Of a stretch of DNA of 64,000 nucleotides, positions 3,001 to 37,993 are shown one piece after another. The notes beneath the pieces are model-generated. The model did not search any database, was not told the origin of the DNA, and was given only the letters and a program-made list of their open reading frames with translations. Numbering within the stretch: the first letter of the stretch is position 1; every line of letters begins with the position of its first letter. Origin of the DNA: Trichoplax adhaerens (Eukaryota; Animalia; Placozoa); assembly GCF_000150275.1 (NCBI RefSeq), contig NW_002060958.1:1196088-1260087 (forward strand), in the 5' to 3' direction. A program made the position numbers and the translations under genes.

Positions 3001-6000
3001 ACTATATTTTAAAGTCCTCACTTTATAGCAGCATTTATCAGTAATATACATGTATGAATATGCCACTGTAAGTGCGATTTATGATGCTTATTTTTACTCA
3101 GTTTGTAAGGAATTTTTGTAACAAAACATGTAGAAGTTATAGGATAGATTAAATTACGAACAGAGATTTGAGAGAGGTCAAGTTGTAGATGAAAGTTAGA
3201 TTCGATATCCTGTTATCCGTTAGATCCCTGGACACGTTTCGAAAGAAATAGAATCAGCTAAAATAATGCGACATTAATAGGAGAAGCCAATAAAGTAATA
3301 GTAAGCTATTGCTGAATTGTAAATTTCAAATTACAAGGTTTGTAAAGATAACAAGTCTTGTAAAGCGCCTTTGGAAATATTTTCAATCTTGTTTGATTGC
3401 AAATGTCTAGTCAAAATTAGAGAAATTAAAACGCTATATAAAAATGAAATTTTAATAATTATTAGTCGTTGTCTAGAGAGTAATAAGAGCGAAAATTAAT
3501 AAAGTCTAGCTAAACAATTAAACAATCTTGAAAATACAACATATCATATCTAGTAATGAGGATTTTGTAGTAATAGAATTGATGCATGTAGAATCATGCA
3601 TTAGAAACTTCATTAGCGTATACGTACAATTTTGTCAATTTAGTTGTATTGGTAAATGAACCAGATTGAATGCTATTAATGAGATTAACATCTAATTTCC
3701 TTAAAAAAAATAATATTATTAAAAACGTATTCCTATAAGAGATTATAGCAATAGATATATCGAGTTGACACAAGTTAGAGCAGGTAAGATTACAGTAAGT
3801 ACAACAAAGTATATGAAAATATTTAGTGCAGTCTTTGAAGCAGACAATGCTTTTGCTAGAGTTTCATTTTATGAAACTTTATATGATCTACTTTTATTTG
3901 ATGTTCTTGCTGATAGGAGTGCTGAAAATGTAATGGAATATTTTTAAAAATGAGTAAAAACTCAAGTTTGGGGAAAATTAATTGATTAATAGAATTATGG
4001 GTGCATAAGATTGATATAAGCTATGATTTTAAAGCACTGTATAAGAAAAATTCTTACTACAACATCTAAAAAAGGCAAATGCAGATTAATGCTTGATAAG
4101 AAAATTCTTTTATTAGTATCTAAACTATAACTGATGATTTGCTTCATAGCATAAAATACTAAATGACTTATAGTGTAGAAAAAGTGAATAACGATAAGAT
4201 TAAAATAAACTCTGTATTTAAATATCACGTTTAAAGATCTATATCCGTTCGAGAATACTTTAGTATATATTATTAAACTTCAAATACTTTAACTGGTTAT
4301 ATAGCTTACAACTCTGTTAGGAGTTTTAAACCAGTAAACATGCCACTATTGATATTGGAAAGGCGGTTTTGGGTTAAAGTACTAAGAATGAGTGAGAAGG
4401 TTACCAGACTTAGCATAATTCACTTCTTATATCTAAAATCAGTCCTAACAGATTTAAACTATAACATCAGTAACTCATAAATCATAATATTATCTTTAAA
4501 AATATTATAAATTGGTCACGAACAGGCTTCGCAGATTTGCACTATCTTGGAATGAATTTGTTTCAATGGTTTCTATATCATTATAGCTGGCATCTCTGAA
4601 ACAAGTTTCATTTATATTTGAATTCCGCATAAAATAGCGAAAATAAAATAGCTGTAAGGAGTTTGAAACCGACTTAGAATAACAAGCACGAGGAATAACT
4701 TTCAAGAAATTTTCTAATAAGATGTAGGTGCAAGTAATGGACTTATAGACGATATAGCTAACGTGTTCTTTCAATATAGATGAAAATATTAAACATTTTC
4801 TAGTATTTAAAGTAAATAAATCCTATTTCTAAGATTAAGGATTGGAATAGTATAGATGACTTGCAATAATGACTGAATATGTGGGAAAGAAATATTGGAT
4901 AGTTCGGCCGAGACATGCAATGCAATATATTTATATTATATTCGAATGTAGCGCTGTAGACTTACATATTTCGAACAGCACTTAAACAAGATAGCGTTCC
5001 ACTTTGGATGATTTTTATGCTACTACTTCTGAATTCTCTGTAAGAACAGTAAGACAGATCGTGTTTTAAAATTAATTAGGTATCGCAAGAGAAGAAATTT
5101 GTGCTAAATAATATTATCGATGCATATCTATAGTAAGCTTATGTGTTATAGTTTTACTTCCACGACATAAATAAGCGTTTGAATTCAATATTTTAACGAC
5201 ATCTGTTAAGGAATCAATCTCTTACAAATAGTTTAGCTTAGGCATTCCACAAAATGCTCTTTCTTTAATCGTTTGGAGACTATTCATATTTAGGTCCCTG
5301 TAATTTATACATAGAATTAAATATCTTCTCTTTGTAGCAAGATATCCATAGAGATGGATAAAAAGCTTTTAATTTAAATAAAGTGAGAACATTACTATTC
5401 TTTGCTAAAAACGAGATATGATATCGATAATCATTCTATTATAATATTTTTGATCGAATTTCAAAAAATAATAGTCAAAGTCTTAAGTCGATACTTACAT
5501 AAAGGTTACCCTAGCTAAGCATGCCAAGGTCAAGTTGGAGAGCTGAGCTAAGTTGTTGGCGTCTAATGATCTGATATCAGGCAGTATAATGAAATGTGGT
5601 ATAGGCGAATTTTGTAGTCAGTTTGATAATAAAGATACAAAGAATCGGTGTATGGAACTGATATTAGAATGAGAAATAAATCGACAAAGCTTACAGTGAT
5701 GCAAGATTGGGTAATTGACAAAATGTCAACGGCTCTATAAAATTGATTAAGTTCTTGCCTAGGTCTCTGGGTGCATATGATATATATATAAGATGAATTA
5801 TTTTGTGAGATTTATAGAAAGTCAGAGGTAAATTGATAACTAATAAATTTTTTATTTTATCACAAATTAGCTCTTCGGCAAGATACTGCAAAAGCTAAAT
5901 CTATAAATTGCCTCTTCGGAATACGTATTAGAGCACTAAAATCTATTTAATAAACACTCAAGGATACTTATTCCTAATTCTACAGATCTTCAGTATTTTT

Positions 6001-9000
6001 TACACCTTTAACTTCACGTTAACTACTTAACTTGAATTTTACTTAGAACTAATTTTACGATACAAAATGGCGGGTTTGATTGCCTTTTTATAGGAGCTAG
6101 AAGTTATCAATAATATCAGTAGCTCCTGTAAATCAGGTAGTAAATTTATATCCAAATGCTTAATTAATAAGCAGTTTAAGGACAGCTATCCGATGTTTAA
6201 CATAAAACAGTTAGTTTACAATATACTCATTCACAGAATTAATCAAGTCAGAGTACATAATCTACTGTGAAGTAGTTATAAATTATATTATTCCCTCCAG
6301 GACTAAAAGCTTTAGGTTGATTAATCGCATATGATCGATTTATAATTAAAGAAAACACTTTGATATATCTGTTGGATCAAAAAGCAATAGAAAAAAGCAT
6401 TTACTGGCCTTCTTTACTTACAAAAAGGTAATCTTATTGAGGCCAGTAAGATCGCTCTTCCGCAACTTTTCCAATAGATTATCCCTTAAATTTCTAAAGA
6501 ATATAACATATATATATATACATATGTTATATAATGCATAAATATCGCAATTATTTAACTTGTTACAGCCTGATATTATAAGCTAATGTTTGAATCGTAA
6601 AAATGAATGAGGATCAACGCTATAAAAATTAATATTATATCGTATTGATAAATGTTACAATATTTAAAAACTAGCTTATTTAATATCAGAAATACATGGT
6701 AATACTTTATTGGTTGGCTCATAGTTTCATTTAAAATTGGAGTTAAAGCCTCAGTCTGACGCAAGTACTGAATTACTATAGCGAATACTTAGTCATTTTA
6801 GCAACTTTTTTGTTAGTAAATCACCTTGCTTCAAAGCTTACGTGAACTCATTAGCTAGTTCTATTTGATGGACTGTTAATTTTAAATAAAATTTTTAAGT
6901 TTTCGGCTTTTATTCCGTATCGATATTGATATTATTTTACTATATTTATTGAGGACTAAACTAATTTCCCATAGAACTGCCGTAGCTTAACGTTTTGATT
7001 TGTGCCATGCTATGTTTGCTAACATTGTAGACTAAATTGCAATTTGAACGATCAATCTAATGTACTGCATTATCATAGAACAAGTTCAATTTACAAGATT
7101 TTTAGTGATCGAAGCATCTCGTAATAAATGGAACACTAGTAATCCTAGGAAGCAATTTGCATCCAGAAAGTAAAATAAAGCTATTTTGTACTATGAATCA
7201 TAAAATGCGATGGAAAAAATTAAGTAGTAATGGTTAAATTGTGATATAATTGGAATATTAGTATTAAATTGTGTTTCCTTAAGGTCATCAGTAAATAAGT
7301 CTAAAATCTATTGCAATTTTCGGAGCCATTCATAAAATGATAGCAAATATAAGTATATAATTCAAATTGCCCATTGCCCTTTATAAAATTATTATCATTG
7401 TTGAAATAGGTTATACACGTGATTACGACGTAAAATTTTTCCTTGCATAGTAATGGATAAAATTAGTGTATATATGATATCGGCGATAATACGAACAGAA
7501 AGCCTAAGTTTTGAAGATTTCTAAAGGAATTAGGTTGTATAGTCTTGATTCGATTCAATGGGAAACGCCTAAAATAATAAATATTTTGAACTAGCATTAG
7601 TAAGTAGCATGAATACGTAACCTTCTCTAATTCAAATCATGGCATTCTGATTTGCTGATAATTATAACGGTTGATCTAAAGCTTTTCATCCTTACAACGT
7701 CTTTAAGGTAGTTAGGCAGCTAAAAGTATCATTTACGATAGACGTAAAATCGTTTCCTTCTAAATCCCTACGATAAGATTTATTAATTGGATCCAACAAA
7801 ATTTTATTAAGAAACAATATGAAATTAAATTGAATTTTGGCCAGTGAAAGTAGAATTTTCCATACAAGGTTGTTAGAGCTGTCAAATTACATATGGCACT
7901 TTTTTTAATTGCTGCTAACTTATTAAATTTCAATCGCCTGCGTAGAGTAGAATATAACAGAAGCCTTTTACACATCATTGATGACAGTTATGGATATTAA
8001 ACAAGATAATCTTTTGAATGTAGGTTTATGTAATGCAAAATTTAAAAATAATTACAATTTCAGAATGATAAGGCTATAGTTGTAATGATAGGTAAATAAT
8101 TCATTCATTAAATTTTTAAAAGCTGAGATTTCTATGAGCGTTGTAAATTGATGAAAGCTATTTATTTTAATTTTATCATCTAAATGTTATCTTTACATCT
8201 GCATATATTCACAAGAGACTTACAGTGACTTTAATGGTGAATCAGTACCGAAATAATTTTGATTGAAAGTGGTAAGCTGGTTTTGAGATAGGGACCTTAC
8301 ATAGTAAATATTGTTTATGAGTTAAAGTGTAATCATGAAATCAGCAGCAGCAGATTTTATTAAGGATTATCAATATTGTCTATGACTCTTTACGTTGTAG
8401 TTAATATTCATCAAGTAATTTAATTAATTTGCTAGTATTACTTACAATGTAGATAACGAAGACAGATACTGAAATGAATTAGGAGCAATATAATCTATCA
8501 GATTATAAGCCAAATCCCTGCGTAGAACGATTTTATAATCAGTACATAATGCTTCCAGGTTGAATGTGTGATTGTTTTACTTCAATTTTAATTTGGCCAT
8601 ATTTTGGTAAGGGGTAAACTATTTGTAATGCTGTTATATATTACATCTGTACATATTATCGACTGCTCGTATATTTTTACAAAATACAAACATGTTTTGA
8701 AAATGTTACATGAATTTGACACTTATAATTTAGAGTATAGTAAATGCTTAACAGCTACTATACTGACTTATATTTTTACCAGAAATTTTTCATTACTATT
8801 GCAAATATGATAATAATAAAGTTCAGTAAATCTAGATAAAGGTTTGCTATACATAGTTTAAAATGATTTAAATTCTGATAACACTAATTAATTGGGTTCT
8901 AATTTAGAAAAATCTCTTTGTATTGGCATATATACCTGTCACAAACTTATGTTGCGAACTACTACACTAAACTACTAGATTACTTATGACTTGCTCCACT

Positions 9001-27600: not shown

Positions 27601-30600
27601 CAACTTGACAGTATTTCTAATAAAAAAGAAGATTCGACTTCAAACTTGAGATGATAATAGATTTTATTATTTTCAGCTTGTAGACTGTCGTCTATGAAAA
27701 ATATTAATTTGGTATCAGTATACGTGTGGATATTGTATGGGCCGATTTTTTTGATCTTTCCTTCCTGGCTTCAATTCAATGTTATTTATAGTATAAACGT
27801 TGACATTATAATTCAGGACCGGTAAATAGTTTCAACAATTTCATCGCATATTATGTAATATTATTTCAATTGACGTCTTTGTTAGCGGTGTGTATTGTTC
27901 ATAAAATAAGGGAGAAAATGTATAAATACTCATCATTTTACATCGATTTCAATTTATTTTGGCAATCGGTTCATAGCCAATCCATCCAAATTTAAAATTT
28001 GCTAAGAATTTTTGGGTCAAGAAATATTAAAAGAAAAATTACCTGTAAGTACACTTAAAATGATATTGTATTGTCAAAAAGTCGCATAAAATTTCAAGAC
28101 TGTGATTGAATCCAATCGCTGCTAGCTAAAAACATCAAAATATTACTGCAATGTTACGTATGATATAAAATTGATCGGATTCATCGATAGGATAAGAACT
28201 TTATATTTTATAAATGGTTTAATGATTAAGTCTGAAGCACCTTCACCTCAGAATGCTATTAAAAGGCAAAATTTTGTACTATATCTTACTAGAATTGATA
28301 AAGTAAGCTAATTAGTGGTTCAATATAGGCTAATCATTTTAAATTTTCAGTTTATTAAAATCGTAAGTCATGATAGCTTGCGAATTATGAATAATTAGCA
28401 CCACAGAAAAATTGTTTAACCGAGAAAGCTACATTAAATTTTAATATTATTTGATGCTGATCGCATCAAATTGATAATATTTTCCATCAATATAAACTGC
28501 TTTGCCGCACACTTTCATAAAGTTATGAAGCTTACTGTATTGCAATTGTGCTAAAATAGTCTTATTCGAAGACAAGTATTGCTTTGCTAGTAATAGGGGT
28601 TATGCTATGAATTACTAGATTTGTTAACATGATGTTTAAGCTACCATTGGAGTAATGCTCAAAAAGTGCATATATGAATTAGAAAATTATAATGCTCGAT
28701 AGAAAAACTGTATTATTATTTGTGATTAGCAGAGGTAATATTAAACATCACAGCATCAGTGCAATTTTGAATCTGGCCATCATTATTCCATGAGTTTCTA
28801 CTTTCATTTTGAGGCGAAAATAGTCACAGAAGTGTAGAAGAAAGATAGTCTATAATTTATAATCCAACATGATTCTTACCGGCGTTTAATAACATATTGA
28901 GATACCGGAAGAAACGCCAAATATTGCTAATTAAAATCGATTTTTTAATTTAAACTTATAAAAAAGAAACCGCAATTACAAAATATATAATCTAATCTCA
29001 AACATTTTATCCTACATCTCGTGAATAATATCTATTCAAGTATAAATTAGATAGAGAAGGCTTGAAATATTAATGAACATTCCCAGTATGGATTAGATAA
29101 TAATTGTAACGGATATGTTAATATTTGGCTTTTCTATTTGATATGCCAACAATTGATTCATGATTAGTCCAATGATAATTTCTGTGGCATTCGATAGTAA
29201 ATTATTATGAAATTTTAGTGAAGGGTACGAGGGCGGATAATTATAATGGAATATGAGAAAAATGGTTTTATTTTACAATATAATTGATTAGTGATGCTAA
29301 ATAACAACAGTATATGAAATCAGCCAATGATTAGTGATGATTTATAATTGTATTAGATACAATAGTGTTGCAAATTACTTAACTTCTAATCATGAATAGA
29401 ATTAAATTATGGCTAGATTTTTAATATTGAAATCTGATTATAATTCAGGTTATCTAGTATATTTTCTATAATAAAATATTACTCAATTTTGGACTGTCCA
29501 TTTTTTTCTAGCTACAATCAATTAATTATTGCATCATTTAGGCTTAAAAATTGATTTCTTAAGCAGATTCAGCAGTATTGTTGTTATTTAGAATCTTGTT
29601 ATCAGAATATTCGATATTACTTAGTTTCTAATGAACAGCTTATTCATTTTTACCTATTGAATTAGACGTGACTATAGGCTGATTATTCATTGGCATTTTA
29701 ATGTGCTTAGGGAATTGATATGTCATGCTATTTTTACCAACCTTGAGAACAATAAGTTATTCTACTGTATTCGCCAGCGAATATATGCTGTATTATTAAT
29801 AAGCATTTTAGCTATCACTGTATACTATATAAAGATATATAAGCCGAAGCCATCAGCATCAGTGGGGGGGGGGAATTTGTACACAAGAGAATCTTTTATT
29901 CAAACCTATAAAAAAAATTTATTTTCCTATCATACTTTTACAGAAAAATTCAACTTTAGATGTTAAAAGGAATTTTAGACTTAAATTTAGGTATGGAATT
30001 TCATTTTAATAATTTAAATAATTAGCTACCATATTTTAGCTTAGATCATAAAGTTAGACTTGTAACAGGTTAGTCCAAAATTTCGACTTTCTCTTTTTGA
30101 ATATTATTTTTGCTTACATTAAATATACACTTTTATATAATAGGGAACAAAGTACCCTTTGCTTTGTTTTTCTATTTTCTTCTATATGCCTTGTTTTAAC
30201 AAGCGTGTATTAACGCGCTTAAGATGCAGCTGATTTGTTACTTTATAGAACTCTTTGAAGCAATTATTCCCAGCGTAGTTTAGTATTTTGTTATTTTCGT
30301 GGGCTTATATCACTAGAAATAAGATTACTCACTTTATTTCCTAAATATACAAATTCGTATGAATGTAATTAAAATAGACTTATAGACTGATTAAATCAAG
30401 GAATTGTTATCAGAAATGTAAACATATTCTAGAATTAGCGTTATTTTTCGATCATATTCAAGCCTTCCTATAATATGGAAAGTCAATAAAAATCTATCAA
30501 ATTACTTCCGTTCTTTTTAACGAAGAATAGCAGGTTATGGTTTCCGGCTATTTATCTTCGTTTAGCTTGCCATAATTCACTACAATGAATAGAAGCTTTT

Positions 30601-31564
30601 CATCTAGTGAATTAAAATTAATGCCATTTTCTATTATTATCAATTGAGTATATTAAAAAATATATTACTCATGTTTCATTTGTTGATTTAGTAGTTTGAG
30701 CTATAAATGATGTGAACTTTTTTATCCGGTCAATTAAAATCGATAGCCGTAAAGCTTTAAATTGTTGTGTTAACGCCTTATGAAGAAGTAGAAATATCAA
30801 ATTCTGCACCTATTATAAATTAGGCTACTGTCCATTAAACTTACCAAATATATGCAGATTTTATAATATACCGTCTTTTATTCCTAGTTAGTTGAATACA
30901 TTCAATACGTCTACTAATGGTATTCGCTAATATGTAGTTATTTCCTTCGTCAAATTGATAGACTTGTTGTAAGCGTTTGTCATTATGAATTATTGACATA
31001 GGGATGTGTTATTTTTAGGATTCTTATTGGAAATAGATAATGAAATTTTTTCTTGGCATTCTCTTTAATTTAGTCATCTGCTTTTGTGATCTTATCTATG
31101 CGAATATAACCGTACATAGTTGATAGGGTAATTTTCAAGTATGATTGAAATATGACCAGTATAAATATATTATTGGATGGTGCAGGTGTTTTCACTTTTT
31201 TTTGTATTAAAAAGTTTTCATTTCAATTTTTTAAGATAATCAATTTGTTGTTATTACCAGAATTGAGAGCATTATTAGATCGATTAATAAATATTAAGTC
31301 AATAAAATTACGTTATGGTATGCACTACTAAGTAGATATGATATAATCACTTCATATTTAGATTTACTTTAATAATACTCTCATTTCATTACATTTTATC
31401 GTTTATATCCGGACATATGCTCACGAAATTATATATGAATCTTTGCGTGAATTATAAATACTGAAAGAATTTAATTCTGTAACTAAAATTGTTGATACGG
31501 TGCACTATAAAGTAATTAATTAACATAAATTTGCTATAATTTTGGTACCGAATAGGACAACACG

Positions 31565-34500
31565 ATGAAGTTTATTGCCGTAGCAACTTTATGCCTGATT
31601 ATATTTGCTATTGATATCAGCTCAGCTAAAGCTGTTATTAAGAATTTAAATCGTTTAAAAGCTGGTGATCAAGATATTTACAGTTTTATCAAGCATATGA
31701 TGGAAAAACATCGTGGAATGCAACCCAATATGGCAGAAAATAAGAGATTGACTTCTAACATTGCGGATAGATCACCATCAGAGAAAATACTCAAGCTACG
31801 TCTTGATGATCGGTATCATGAACTACTACGCAGGAAAGAAGATGCATATGACGAACTAGATCGTTATGTTAGTCAATCTATCAGGAATAGTCGTTTTCGG
31901 TCTTTTAAGGGAATTAATTTAGGTAAGTTACTTAAAGTATTTATATTATTGAATAATCGGCTACTATTTTCATGTTATCTAGCTGTAATGATTTCGTCTT
32001 GATAATTTATAAAATTTAAAATATTAATGCCATAGTAGTTATTTAGACTGACCTTTAGCTCACTTTAAGACTTGAAATATTTAATTACATATTTTTCATA
32101 ATGTATGTACTAGACGTACAAAGTTACCGTATAAGACATTAAACTAAAGTAAATCTTTTCTAAAGGAAACATCGATATCACAGACATGCATTTATCCTTT
32201 GGTATTAGTCATTTCTAGAGTTCCAGTCCCATATAACATTTTGTTCTCGATTGTTATTTTCGTCTATGCACCTGCCTTCAGTTTTCTTGTATTATATATA
32301 GTGACATATGCCATATTGGTCGAGGTTAAAATATTAATTCTCAAATTTGTGTACACGCATAAGAATGTCCGCAACATGCAATATGACGTTTTCATTTGCT
32401 TATCATGCCGAATGATAAATCAGCAAGACCAAATATTGGCATTCTGCCATTTAATCAATTAGTCTACTTTATTCTTTCTCTGTTATTATTGTTGCGACGG
32501 CTTTAAATTGTTAAGATTTTAATGACCTTAAATGCCTTATTAATCCAAAAGGATTATTTCTAAATTATGAGCCCTTAAGCCTGATCTAGTAAAATAAATT
32601 TTCGTGTTGGTATACTCTGCTTTTTATTATTTTTATATTACTATACTACAAAGAGATGGCCAATAGTTAATTCTCTTTGCTATTATTGCTTATCAAACTT
32701 AATCTGTAGATTCAATTATTGTTTATGACAATGAGATCAATAGCAAGAATCAATTTAATACTTGTTCATTTTCTAATGGATCTTCAATTGGTTACTCTAC
32801 CAGCTAATTTGAAATTTTATTTTACTACATTAGAAGACATGTTGAAATCAAGAAACGCATTTAATGAATTGACGCCAGAACGAAAGGAACTTGGTAAGGC
32901 TATATTATTGATACATTTTTATGTTAAGGATTAAAATTTAATCATCTACATATAATATAATGGTGAAATGGTCTTTCTCACATTGAGTTTGCAATCAATG
33001 CTAAGTTCATAGAGTAACGCCAAGTATTTAATATTCGAATACAAAATTTGAATAATTAAAATAAATACTGTATTAAATATTTTGTCAAGTTGCTAAATAT
33101 CGTTTTTCATTAAATATTTACTTTGAAGTCCATGCAGTACAATCGATTCAGTAGGAATTTCTGATTTTCGAAAACAACACCATAAACTTTGTTTACTTCA
33201 TTCACATGAAATGTATTATGGGTTGTAACGACTGATACTTATAGTTAGATAGAGCAATACGTTTTGTGATTGCTTAATAATTTTTACTTACTCGCAGTAT
33301 AATAATAGTTTGATATAGCTTTGGTTGCAGCTAATTCACGTGAGAATACATATGCATTTAAGTCTATTTAGTTTAGTGGTAGATTTTGCAATCCAATTTT
33401 GAAATGCTAATGCATTCGCAAATCTGTCATACAAAGTAAGTCAGTGGCGATAATAGTAAAGTGTTTTAAAAATTAATAGTTAAAATTTTAGATTCTTAAT
33501 CACTAGATCAAATCTATCGAAAGGAAGTAACTTTCCCTACTCTTGTTTTGTGGTGTTACAAAGAGATATAGAATAACTATTACTTTATGTGGGCCTAAAT
33601 GTCATCAGAAGAAGGGATAAATGAAAACCTTTTTAATTATTATTGCTAATAAAGCCTGTCTGATAACATATAATCAATTATAATTATATAATATACCGGT
33701 TTCATTGTTAGTTTTAACCTTCAATTTGAATTGGACCATCACTATAAGAATTATTAATGAATGACTGAGTACTTTGCTATTAACAAGTCGATCATTTCCA
33801 TAATCTTGAATTTGTTTTCTTATCCTTTATACTTTATTACACCTAAGATAGAGATGATTTCTACAGTAGTTACAGTAAGACAGTGACAAGTTGCGCCTAT
33901 TTAATATAGGCAGTAATTTCTTTACCTTTTTTTCTTTTTCGTCTATGGTATATAACAACAATTATACTGCTTTGCTAATGAAAATAAGTTACTCAGGATT
34001 AAATAACTGATCAACCTACTAATAATATTGAAATAGTCGAAATACGAGATGATTTCAACTTAAATTTAGCCATAGTATTCCTTGCATTTTTCGATTTAAA
34101 TTTACCATGTTCTGATCGAAGCTATATGAAATTATTCTGCATTTTCTAAAGAGTAGACAAAAGCAGATGTTCTTTACTAAAACATCATTTAGAACATTTA
34201 ATTTCACCATCTTGCATTTGTCCATATGATATACAAAGATACTTACGATGATTCTAATCATCATAGCTAAGAATAGTCGAATTAACGTTATTTTAGTGAC
34301 TATTAAGTATAATTAGGCTAGCATTCCATTGCAATTGAACTATGGTTACTTTAAGTATTTATGTTAGTTATTTGTTGAAATGCAGTTTATAATTTCTGTT
34401 GCTCAATTCGTTGAAAAGATTCCATTATATTATATACGTAATTACTTAATTACGTCGGTGTTAGAGTTAATGAAGTATTTTCTTAATGACCTATTTCAAT

Positions 34501-35264
34501 AAAGAGATCTGATTATGTCAAATAGTTAAATGATAGTGCTCCAATAGTCTAGCTTGGTTTTCACTTAAGCTATTCGTAAAGTATGATTAAACAAAAGGAT
34601 TTAAGAGAAAACTATAATTGTTGAATACAGTACGTATAACTAGTCAAATGAATTGCTTCGCCTTAATTTTTCTAAACTGCATGATAATATACAATCGATG
34701 TTTTTCAAATTTGTATTATTTTACGTAATCTGCTCCTACTATGACGTGATTAAATTTATTCGATTAATGCAATTATGATGTTATCGACTGCATTAGTTAT
34801 TGTTAATGATGAAATTGATGACGATGTTGATTCTGGTTTTGTTTATCGTCATTGATTTAGCTGCCAAACCTCCAAGTCGAGTTGACGAAAAAGGCGACGA
34901 TAGAGACGATAATGAAACCACAAGCGAAAATGATAACTCTAGTCAAGATGATAAAATTCATGGAGAATCCAGTGAAAATGATAAGAATAACGGGGATGAT
35001 AGCAAACAGTCTGATTTGTTAAAGCAGCAAAAACAACAACAACAACAACAACAACAGCAAGACAATGAAGAATATGAAAAGCAAAAGCAAAAGGTTGAGC
35101 AACAGCAAAAATTGCTACAAGAGCAAGAGGAAATGAGAAAACAAAAACAGAAGTTTCTTGAAGAAACTGGCAAGAAAGAAAATGATAAAGATAAGGAACC
35201 AAGTAAAGACAAAAATAAACAAAAAGGTTGTAAACTAGGTACATTTTGGTTCTATTGCATCTAA
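31565..35264 (+). CDS. Secreted prohormone/neuropeptide-precursor-like protein, ~273 aa; exons 31565-31922, 32834-32893, 34861-35264
   Basis: Signal peptide MKFIAVATLCLIIFAIDISSA. Both introns are phase 1 with GT-AG ends (AG|GTAAGT, cattag|; TG|GTAAGG, gatttag|) and keep the frame open (358+60+404=822 nt). Basic clusters KR, RRK, RK and KK; acidic and polyQ spacer; C-terminal Cys-x8-Cys motif. Confidence 0.72.
35031..35060 (+). repeat. (CAA)n microsatellite encoding polyglutamine
   Basis: aaacaacaacaacaacaacaacaacagcaa within exon 3 of the precursor. Confidence 0.9.
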
Positions 35265-37993
35265 TGGACGTCAGCCTAAAAAGCAATCAAACTTAAAATT
35301 GCTTTAGAGAAGATTACAAAACATAAAATATTCCAAAATATTATATAACTTTTACATGGTTGATTTAAAAATATTTATTTCAATATACCGGTAAATAATA
35401 CCTGAATGAATTAAAATTATACTGTAAGAAACATAAAAACTAGTTAGGGAAGGAATATACTGAGGACTATAACATGATTGAGAGATAGATAAGGTTACAT
35501 AGACTCATCCAAGAATTCTTCTACTCCGACATTATCGATCTACGGAGAATATAAAAAAATTGTCTATATCATGCAAAAATTGTCTGCCTGAGCATCTACG
35601 TTGATATAGTATAAATCAGAATGCTATTGATTGTAATGATATCATAAATACAAATATATAACAAATAGAAATATAATCATGTATACGGCATAGAGAAGAA
35701 ATAAATTGCCGAATTATTCTCTGTATCCCTATTAGTGTTGGTTTTTGCGATTTAATCAATAACCAAATCCTAATTATGCATTAAGGTTGTTAACAATCTA
35801 GCTATTATATCATCTATATTAAAGTCTCATCTATATACATGCTGCTTAATTAATTAATCAGTCAAGCAATGTTAATAACTTGCCCTTCACCTGATTATCA
35901 AAATTAATAAAAAGAATAAAAGCTGATATGACATAAAATTTATAATGTTGTTTGTTTATTCTCTTACAAAGGAATCACGATAACTATTATTACAACAGAT
36001 TTATTTTCTGAATTTGCTATTACTCTATAACCCTCTACTCTGGTACTATCATGGTACTGTATGGACTTGACAGAATAACATTTTCCAACAATGCTAACGT
36101 ATGGCTATAATATTTCAGTTAGTATTTCTCATCTTGAATGGGAATAAGACTTTAGTTCGATCTTGATGACTGAATGCTTTCAATTTAATTTAGGTCATAA
36201 GATGAATTTAGCTACATTATTGCGTAGTATTATTAATAAAGTACATCTGTATATTACAGCAAGAGCTACCGTTTCATATCGACTTCGTTTATGACACAAT
36301 TTGGTTCTCCTACTAACTGCAAGTTAGCAAAGACTATTTACCTCCAGTCTCAAGCTATTTTAACTAATTATATCGCTATCTACGATGGATGTGCGGTATA
36401 CTTGTACCAGTATATCAAACTATGTTGCTGTACAGCATAACTGACTATAATAGAATTTAATCTATATTATTAACTTGAGCAGACTGCGTTAACACAAGCT
36501 CTTCTTTGAGATATGCTAATGAGCATTATCGATAACTTTAATCTCGCTTTTGATGAAAATTATATTCGTCTACTAGCTAGAATATTGTATATCAAAGCAG
36601 TTTTAATTCTAATACCTACATAGGGATTACTCTGTATAAAAAATACTTTTGGTTGGGTGTAAGGTATTTTAACTCCATTTTTTTTTTATGAATCAAACGG
36701 TAGACGCAGCCATTAGCAACCAAAATAAATCATGTTAGATGATAATTGCGATTCAAGAGTTCATATCTGACGAGCCCTAATGTAGAGTCTCTTTACTGTC
36801 ATGTTTTCATATTGTAACTTTAAAATTTGGAGCAGGGCTATCATTTGCGATCAGATAACCTAGCATAACTTTGTGAACAGAATTTAGGGTTAAAGAGAAA
36901 TAAAATTTGGATACATTTGTTCATGCTGATTCCTGTTCAATATTGCTGTGATTTATAGAGTACTATGCAACGTTGAAGCTACGAATGTTACAAGTACTAC
37001 GTTGAAATGTTGAAATTAGAAACGTTTGTATATATGGTCGATTAATTTTCCAAACTAGCGTTTTATAGACCTGTTACGGCATTATGTTACCTAAATTAAT
37101 AGAGTTTATAGAAATGTTGATGCTTACAATGTTATAGTAGGTGTACTCGTCGTTATTGGTTTCAATCAGTTGATTTTGTGTGAGAAGAATGAGTGATAAG
37201 TTCACTGAATAAAGAAGATTTGTAGATTAATTAATCATTATAGGACACCTTGCCTACTGATTGTAAGCCATAAGTAGTAAGACTAGATCACTTCCTGTAT
37301 AGAATATAGAATTAAAACTACGTTTTTAAAATGGAGAAGCTGCTTACGCGTATTAAATACTTCAAGGGTTCGTTTCGAAATCGACTTGTATGGGATAAAT
37401 GTCTATAATTTTAATTTAAGCGTTACTAAACGTCTATTAATTGACATTGATTTATCAATTTTATACGTTCGTTCTTGTGAATGACTGTAAGTCTGTGTTA
37501 CTAACAGTTGTTGTAATTCTATGCTGCCACTTCTCAAAAAATCGCTCTGCTTAGGTATTCCGGTTAGTCAGTGCGCTGAAACGATGTGTATTGACGATCC
37601 TTTATTTACAATCAAATACTTTTCTCTGTGGACGAAATCACTTAAACCTACCAACTAGAACTGAAAACAGCCACTTCTACCGAATGTAATAGTAGATACT
37701 GAGCTATAATGGGTATTGTACCCATTAATTAGCATTACCTAGCTGTCTTTAATGAGGGAATAATCCCTAGCTCCTACTATAGCTTATTGAAAGGATTATT
37801 ATATTGCGTTCAATTAGGCCAAAGTAGAAGACAGTTAACTGTCCTTACTTTAAGTTAAATTAGGAAGGCTTTAAGGGTTCAATTAGCAATATAGGAGATG
37901 GTGCGTTATTAAGACAGCCTGATTAGTAATACCTATCCTTAATACAGAATTACAACAAGCGTACAGCAGATCCTTCAGATTTTTACTTGATGT

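Follow-up and report, generated by a model that had tools for sequence, protein, structure and literature searches.

A transcribed, placozoan-restricted gene of Trichoplax adhaerens ends in an aromatic two-cysteine tail that may be a cyclic signalling peptide

Somatostatin-related peptides, a group that includes urotensin II, URP and the protostome SSRP-like peptides, are defined by a Trp-Lys motif and a disulfide loop (Koch et al. 2022, PMC9048919). The same study reported six residues between the Cys of allatostatin-C and of SSRP-like peptides and a phase-0 intron in the pro-region that is common to all genes of these families examined. Gamma-rhodopsin receptors, including those for somatostatin and allatostatin-C, are reported to be bilaterian-specific (Thiel et al. 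2024, PMC11087051), and the GPCRs of placozoans to be largely products of lineage-specific expansions (Najle et al. 2023, PMC10580291). Placozoans coordinate their behaviour without neurons by means of secreted peptides, and the known set of these is mostly linear, often amidated and multi-copy. Within a 64,000-nucleotide window of Trichoplax adhaerens DNA (contig NW_002060958.1, from a 105.6-Mb assembly that comprises 1414 contigs), an initial annotation had picked out a secreted precursor, now identified as TRIADDRAFT_60614, with the C-terminal 12-mer GCKLGTFWFYCI and had proposed it as a non-bilaterian member or analogue of the somatostatin/urotensin II/allatostatin-C family. The analysis reported here confirmed the sequence observation but not the family assignment.

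TRIADDRAFT_60614 lies in AT-rich eukaryotic DNA (i.e. ~29% G+C around the gene). The coding model joins positions 31565-31922, 32834-32893 and 34861-35264 into 273 codons with no internal stop, and both coding introns are in phase 1 with GT..AG ends. The joined translation is identical to a public record (EDV20922.1 / XP_002116566.1 / UniProt B3S8P7) that is annotated as 'uncharacterized protein TRIADDRAFT_60614' of Trichoplax adhaerens. RNA contigs from four public runs were aligned on positions 31300-35900. Contigs of three runs, each from a different study (i.e. X12, X7 and X5), carried both of the joints, 31922/32834 and 32893/34861, reproducing exactly the spliced gene of 31565-35264 proposed in the initial annotation. 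No joint was present in the contigs of these runs between 34860 and ~35958. Each run provided one joint-free contig from 35102 to past 35860, and for X12 and X7 the interval 34860-35019 was covered in the same record; a coverage gap at 35020-35101 was false, being due to repeat-masking during read placement. A CAA/CAG run at these same positions encodes a poly-Gln stretch in the last exon. Splicing at potential donors at 35227 or 35239, which would have made the tail intronic, was discarded: the contigs run joint-free through both positions, indicating that these donors are unused in the assembled transcripts of the three runs, although rare isoforms could hide. The reading frame of 35226-35264 thus ends with GCKLGTFWFYCI followed by TAA (35262-35264), and TRIADDRAFT_60614 is a real, transcribed gene that is spliced as modelled.

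The ends of the transcript were also examined (Table 1). A GTAAGT donor at 28045 lies directly 3' of a 5' exon that is non-coding, so that the 5' UTR is interrupted by an intron of 3.5 kb (28045-31555). The frame is closed within this exon by a TAA at 28003-28005, and inspection of the exon sequence revealed no ATG, indicating that 31565 is the first AUG and ruling out a longer frame that starts in the 5' exon. A TATAAATA box is present at 27921-27928, near the start of the exon. In one RNA contig the joint is preceded by 119 nt, so that its start would fall inside or just past the TATA box, and the start of the exon is accordingly given as approximate. At the 3' end, AATAAA occurs at 35906-35911 and 35915-35920 and the RNA contigs end just past both.

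Table 1. Features of the TRIADDRAFT_60614 transcript and of its protein product, as positions in the window.
Feature	Positions	Strand	Content and evidence
Non-coding 5' exon	27926..28044 (start approximate)	+	Loose RNA contig ends before 31556 match 28015-28044 exactly
Start-codon exon	31556..31922	+	ATG at 31565; residues 1-119 plus one base; ends in phase 1; RNA joint 31922/32834 in three runs
Signal peptide (predicted)	31565..31633	+	Residues 1-23; predicted cut after Ala-Lys-Ala; judged by eye
Most conserved pro-region island	31808..31867	+	Residues 82-101 around the conserved Arg-Arg-Lys; dN 0.14
60-nt exon	32834..32893	+	Flanked by phase-1 introns; residues 120-139; conserved Arg-Lys site; RNA joints on both sides
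Last exon, coding part	34861..35264	+	Residues 140-273 and stop; sequence and RNA contigs
Gln/Lys/Glu/Asp-rich segment	35001..35192	+	Residues 187-250; one long helix predicted
Lys-x-Lys-x-Lys-x-Lys linker	35205..35225	+	K255-K261, reads K-D-K-N-K-Q-K; adjoins the tail
C-terminal 12-mer GCKLGTFWFYCI and stop	35226..35264	+	Cys263, Cys272 and the only Trp; unchanged in RNA contigs of three runs
3' UTR	35265..35958	+	RNA contigs reach ~58-60 nt beyond 35900

Several differences between the RNA contigs and the reference were observed. At 35166 the reference has an A (Thr242) and the contigs of all three covering runs (X7, X12 and X5) have a G (Ala242); this reflects either strain variation or an error in the reference, and it falls in the pro-region, outside the tail. 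Small indels were found in the 3' UTR (35310-35317 and 35553), where X12 and X5 lack 8 nt and X7 contains single inserted Ts. Run X7 represents a strain that is 95-99% identical to the reference, and its 39 nt of tail are unchanged, an identity that is uninformative at ~1.3% divergence.

The general outline of the protein given in the initial annotation was borne out. A signal peptide was recognised by eye from its basic start, 14-residue hydrophobic core and small residues at -3/-1, and the hydrophobic 9-mers of the 273-aa protein are confined to residues 3-18. The charged, low-complexity middle that had been described consists of residues 24-139, which are basic and helical with a net charge of +6 and contain Lys-Arg, Arg-Arg-Lys and Arg-Lys sites, and residues 140-261, which are rich in Gln/Lys/Asp/Glu with a net charge of -7; five basic clusters occur in this charged, Gln-rich chain. 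Single-sequence AlphaFold2 (two models) gave low confidence everywhere except for a helix at residues 187-250 (pLDDT 86-92 over about 200-240), and the tail was modelled as coil with a pLDDT of <50. No family match was found in Pfam (exons at E up to 1; full protein at E up to 10) and no relative in a PDB sequence search. The mature chain is helical or disordered and is without a recognisable domain, and the protein exhibits the generic properties of a prohormone, i.e. a signal peptide, no transmembrane segment and no globular domain. A disulfide-stapled coiled coil was considered and rejected, as only 7 of 51 residues in the helix are hydrophobic and these exhibit no a/d heptad pattern.

Cysteines are present in the 273-aa protein only at positions 10 (within the signal peptide), 263 and 272, and the single Trp is at 269, so that, as had been noted, no Cys occurs in the mature chain outside the aromatic Cys-x8-Cys tail. 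Under random placement, both Cys would fall in the last 12 residues of the 250-residue mature chain with a post hoc p of 0.002, and the post hoc p for both Cys and the only Trp falling within 12 of 250 residues is about 1e-4. The linker that adjoins the tail contains no Arg and no adjacent basic pair and is not a canonical dibasic site; only the single-Lys sites reported in the initial annotation precede the tail, with candidate cleavage sites after K259 or after K261. Anchoring of the tail by GPI, a transmembrane segment or prenylation was rejected on the grounds that only 7 of its residues are hydrophobic, that Cys is not at -4 and that the protein is luminal.

Relatives of the first coding exon were sought with HMMER among 1.84 billion representative proteins and only two clusters were obtained. 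The first comprises Trichoplax sequences, namely the full T. adhaerens protein and TrispH2_012061 of Trichoplax sp. H2. The latter is a partial model of 139 aa that ends at exon 2 because its contig (NOWV01000359.1; gene at 5001-6326) ends before the last exon, and any proteomic or orthology study relying on the H2 annotation is therefore blind to the C-terminal exon. The second cluster is a distant orthologue (P0002) encoded on genomic Logan contigs L003 and L004 of SRR30664516/7, with 47% identity to TRIADDRAFT_60614 over exon 1. The exon layout of P0002 is the same, with a first coding exon that ends in phase 1, a 60-nt exon (L003:3989-4048) and a last exon that starts at the same point; both contigs stop at most 70 nt into this last exon, before the tail. 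The signal peptide is identical at 17 of 23 residues and the Arg-Arg-Lys and Arg-Lys sites are kept. Synonymous sites are saturated (pS 0.70) and dN is 0.35 overall, falling to 0.17 in the signal peptide and 0.14 in the Arg-Arg-Lys island. Saturation of synonymous sites combined with this dN indicates that the gene is old within placozoans and that purifying selection acts on its N-terminal half on both sides of a deep split among placozoans.

TRIADDRAFT_60614 is restricted to placozoans. No homologues of the last exon were found by word-index searches with 133 aa (E up to 0.01) or with 95 aa (E up to 10), a result that is weakened by the low-complexity sequence and a length filter, and ESM Atlas yielded no usable match for this exon. 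P0002 used as a query found only itself, a scan of JGI metagenomes with the exon-1 alignment detected no relative, and no paralogues of exon 1 or of the last exon were found in the T. adhaerens genome. A back-translated FWFYC pattern matched the genome at eight further places, which lay in stop-filled frames or had no similar context and were attributed to chance. In ESM Atlas, the neighbours of the N-terminal 119 aa were almost all neuropeptide precursors (DH31, UTS2B, PDH, NPY, PBAN, galanin and NPFF), with scores of 0.84-0.90 and few shared features that fall below threshold and serve as leads only. These neighbours are taken as a general resemblance to prohormones and not as kinship.

The reading that we favour, at a probability of roughly 0.4, is that TRIADDRAFT_60614 encodes a placozoan prohormone that has been overlooked and that its tail is set free as a disulfide-closed peptide of 12 or 14 residues. 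Cys263 and Cys272 would close a 10-residue ring in the oxidising secretory pathway and a cut in the Lys-x-Lys linker would free the tail. Cleavage after K261 would generate the 12-mer G262-I273 (computed mass of 1434.65 Da when oxidised), and cleavage after K259 the 14-mer Q260-I273, whose N-terminal Gln could be converted to pyroglutamate (computed mass of 1673.77 Da when oxidised). The cyclic peptide might then signal in a paracrine manner through one of the many receptors that are specific to placozoans. The mode of working would be like that of somatostatin and urotensin II, each precursor yielding a single disulfide-closed peptide from its C-terminus, in a layout that most probably arose independently. 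This interpretation is favoured because the gene model and an intact C-terminus are present in RNA of three studies and agree with the 273-aa record, because a signal peptide is present and the Cys and Trp of the mature chain are confined to the tail, and because the absence of a domain or fold and the low AlphaFold confidence in the pro-region are as expected of a precursor. The neuropeptide-precursor neighbours of the N-terminal 119 aa, as below-threshold leads, and the retention of exon structure, signal peptide and basic sites in the orthologue at a dN of 0.35 against saturated dS point in the same direction. The more specific proposal, in which the tail is a disulfide-cyclised signalling peptide of 12 or 14 residues that acts on a lineage-specific placozoan GPCR and has been missed by every screen so far, is possible but doubtful.

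The lack of a canonical dibasic or Arg site directly before the tail counts against the prohormone reading; a cut after K261 places Lys at P1, P3, P5 and P7 and not at the usual P2, P4 or P6. Unconventional processing is supported by the peptides measured in Trichoplax by mass spectrometry (Najle et al. 2023, PMC10580291), among which, in the listed part of Table S5, single-Lys flanks and an N-terminal pyroglutamate are frequent. Conservation of the whole N-terminal half also counts against the prohormone reading, as it suggests that the pro-region is more than a spacer.

The main rival is that the protein works intact, in a granin-like or matrix-like manner, with the terminal Cys pair acting as a sorting or aggregation loop or forming interchain disulfides, with no free 12-mer and with any active fragments coming from the N-terminal half by cutting at Arg-Arg-Lys and Arg-Lys. 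Disulfide loops serve as granule-sorting signals in chromogranins A and B and in POMC, and TRIADDRAFT_60614 is like the granins in being secreted, charged, Gln/Glu-rich and largely unstructured, with multiple basic sites and a single short loop that is predicted to be disulfide-closed. The strongest purifying selection in the N-terminal half lies around Arg-Arg-Lys, a long helix predicted with confidence directly precedes the tail, the composition is charged and Gln-rich with its basic clusters, and no canonical cleavage site precedes the tail. The granin loop, however, is N-terminal and longer (about 20 residues), granins are strongly acidic whereas the two parts of this chain carry net charges of +6 and -7, and there is no sequence similarity to granins or match to any known family. 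The helix also lacks the heptad pattern of a stapled coiled coil. An intact function is considered a serious possibility, albeit short of an even chance.

A precursor of a defence peptide, with the layout of cathelicidin-type cyclic dodecapeptides or of the frog 'Rana box' peptides and an antimicrobial or anti-predator tail, was also considered. Its architecture of signal, anionic or neutral pro-region and C-terminal peptide with a predicted disulfide loop is shared by TRIADDRAFT_60614, the transcript contigs have a high word depth in the RNA runs (a poor measure of expression), and evolution between strains is fast, with four replacement and three silent differences, as read from the listed differences, between run X7 and the reference in the first coding exon. 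Known disulfide-looped antimicrobial peptides are amphipathic-cationic, whereas the tail has a net charge of only +1, and defence peptides usually form families whereas no paralogue family was detected here, making a defensive role distinctly improbable. A Cys pair of no special role, in a tail that is by chance the hydrophobic end of a secreted orphan protein that evolves fast, would fit with a lineage-restricted gene and with tail conservation known only from near-identical Trichoplax strains. The clustering of both Cys and the only Trp, for all that its p value is post hoc, the abrupt change in composition past the Lys-rich linker and the age and constraint of the gene make such an accident unlikely.

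The view in the initial annotation that this peptide had not been described before held for the literature searched, in which no text contained 'FWFYC' or any identifier of TRIADDRAFT_60614. The gene identifier was likewise absent among the rows listed in the supplementary material of Najle et al. 2023 and in that of a 2024 secretory-cell preprint, and no fragments of the precursor occurred among the rows listed in the tables of Najle et al. 2023. The latter absence is weak evidence against a released peptide because the H2 model of the gene, on which that peptidomics relied, lacks the last exon, because the extraction is described without reduction or alkylation, because the candidate filters of that study (PMC10580291) need a dibasic plus Gly-basic signature that is absent here, and because the comparison covers the listed rows only.

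Membership of the somatostatin/urotensin II/allatostatin-C family was not upheld. Several features do recall these peptides: a two-Cys loop with a predicted disulfide lies at the extreme C-terminus, in a single peptide per signal-peptide precursor; the core is an aromatic Phe-Trp; and the tail starts with 'GCK' as in somatostatin-14 and ends with F-W-x-Y-C-aliphatic as in urotensin II. This likeness is real to the eye and amounts to five or six residues of the 12-mer. A UTS2B precursor cluster was the sixth-ranked ESM Atlas neighbour of exon 1 with a below-threshold score of 0.87. Among the listed entries of Table S3 of Najle et al. 2023, a Trichoplax 7tm_1 GPCR (Tadh_TriadG60377) bears the automatic name somatostatin_receptor_2, a label that is not evidence of orthology. 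Against these stand both of the hallmarks set out by Koch et al. 2022 (PMC9048919). The defining Trp-Lys motif (WK, as in FWKT or FWKY) is absent, the tail reading F-W-F-Y with Phe in place of Lys, and the phase-0 pro-region intron is missing, both introns being in phase 1 by the RNA joints and likewise in P0002. Eight residues separate the Cys of the tail, a spacing that fits none of the 10 in somatostatin-14, four in urotensin II or six in allatostatin-C and SSRP-like peptides. No match to the Pfam somatostatin, urotensin II or UTS2B families was obtained (exons at E up to 1; full protein at E up to 10), the receptor clade for somatostatin and allatostatin-C is reported to be bilaterian-specific (PMC11087051), placozoan GPCRs are reported to be mostly lineage-specific (PMC10580291), and a likeness over 12 residues picked by eye from a whole-genome scan has no statistical weight. 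That TRIADDRAFT_60614 is a true pre-bilaterian homologue of these hormones is hence very improbable, and there is as little reason to believe that the tail is a urotensin II/somatostatin relative that has lost its Lys. Kinship with somatostatin or urotensin II is not supported by anything tested and the origin of the somatostatin system is not pushed back before Bilateria on present evidence. Of the proposal of a 'member or analogue', the analogue stays possible and the member is unlikely.

The tail may constitute a cyclic signalling peptide that is new, a functional claim that would rest on one step, i.e. conservation or detection of the tail. If true, this would be, to our knowledge, the first cyclic regulatory peptide of Placozoa, and a single-copy, non-amidated, disulfide-closed product would widen the placozoan repertoire. 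Motif-based screens and non-reducing peptidomics would then be missing a class of ligand, and the many unassigned placozoan receptors would gain a concrete orphan ligand of predicted mass.

Comparison with the closest known systems places this candidate apart from each of them. Relative to somatostatin-related precursors, the pro-region is much longer (about 240 aa) and contains a Gln/Lys/Glu helix, and the peptide is preceded by neither an Arg nor a dibasic site. Allatostatin-C of protostomes is similar to the predicted product in being a C-terminal disulfide-looped peptide with no requirement for Trp-Lys but always has six residues between its Cys (Koch et al. 2022, PMC9048919), shares the phase-0 intron across its genes and signals through a receptor clade that is reported to be bilaterian-specific. 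Cyclic peptides are already predicted for non-bilaterians and the kind is known: the cyclic FRamides of box jellyfish (e.g. CTGQMCWFRamide; Nielsen et al. 2019, PMC6402141) resemble the TRIADDRAFT_60614 tail in having a putative cystine ring and a Trp-Phe pair and in being predicted from sequence only. Unlike this tail, the cubozoan peptides occur seven times in each precursor, carry a C-terminal amide, follow a classical Lys-Arg site and have a ring with four residues between the Cys at the peptide N-terminus. Known Trichoplax precursors (PWN, SIFGamide, RWamide and others) share with TRIADDRAFT_60614 a signal peptide, restriction to placozoans and unconventional or single-Lys flanks, with pyroglutamate in many of the products listed, but are mostly multi-copy and often amidated, with no Cys loop among the rows listed. 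TRIADDRAFT_60614 would, in contrast, give a single, non-amidated, cyclic product and, if confirmed, a new placozoan cyclic peptide with an unusual layout.
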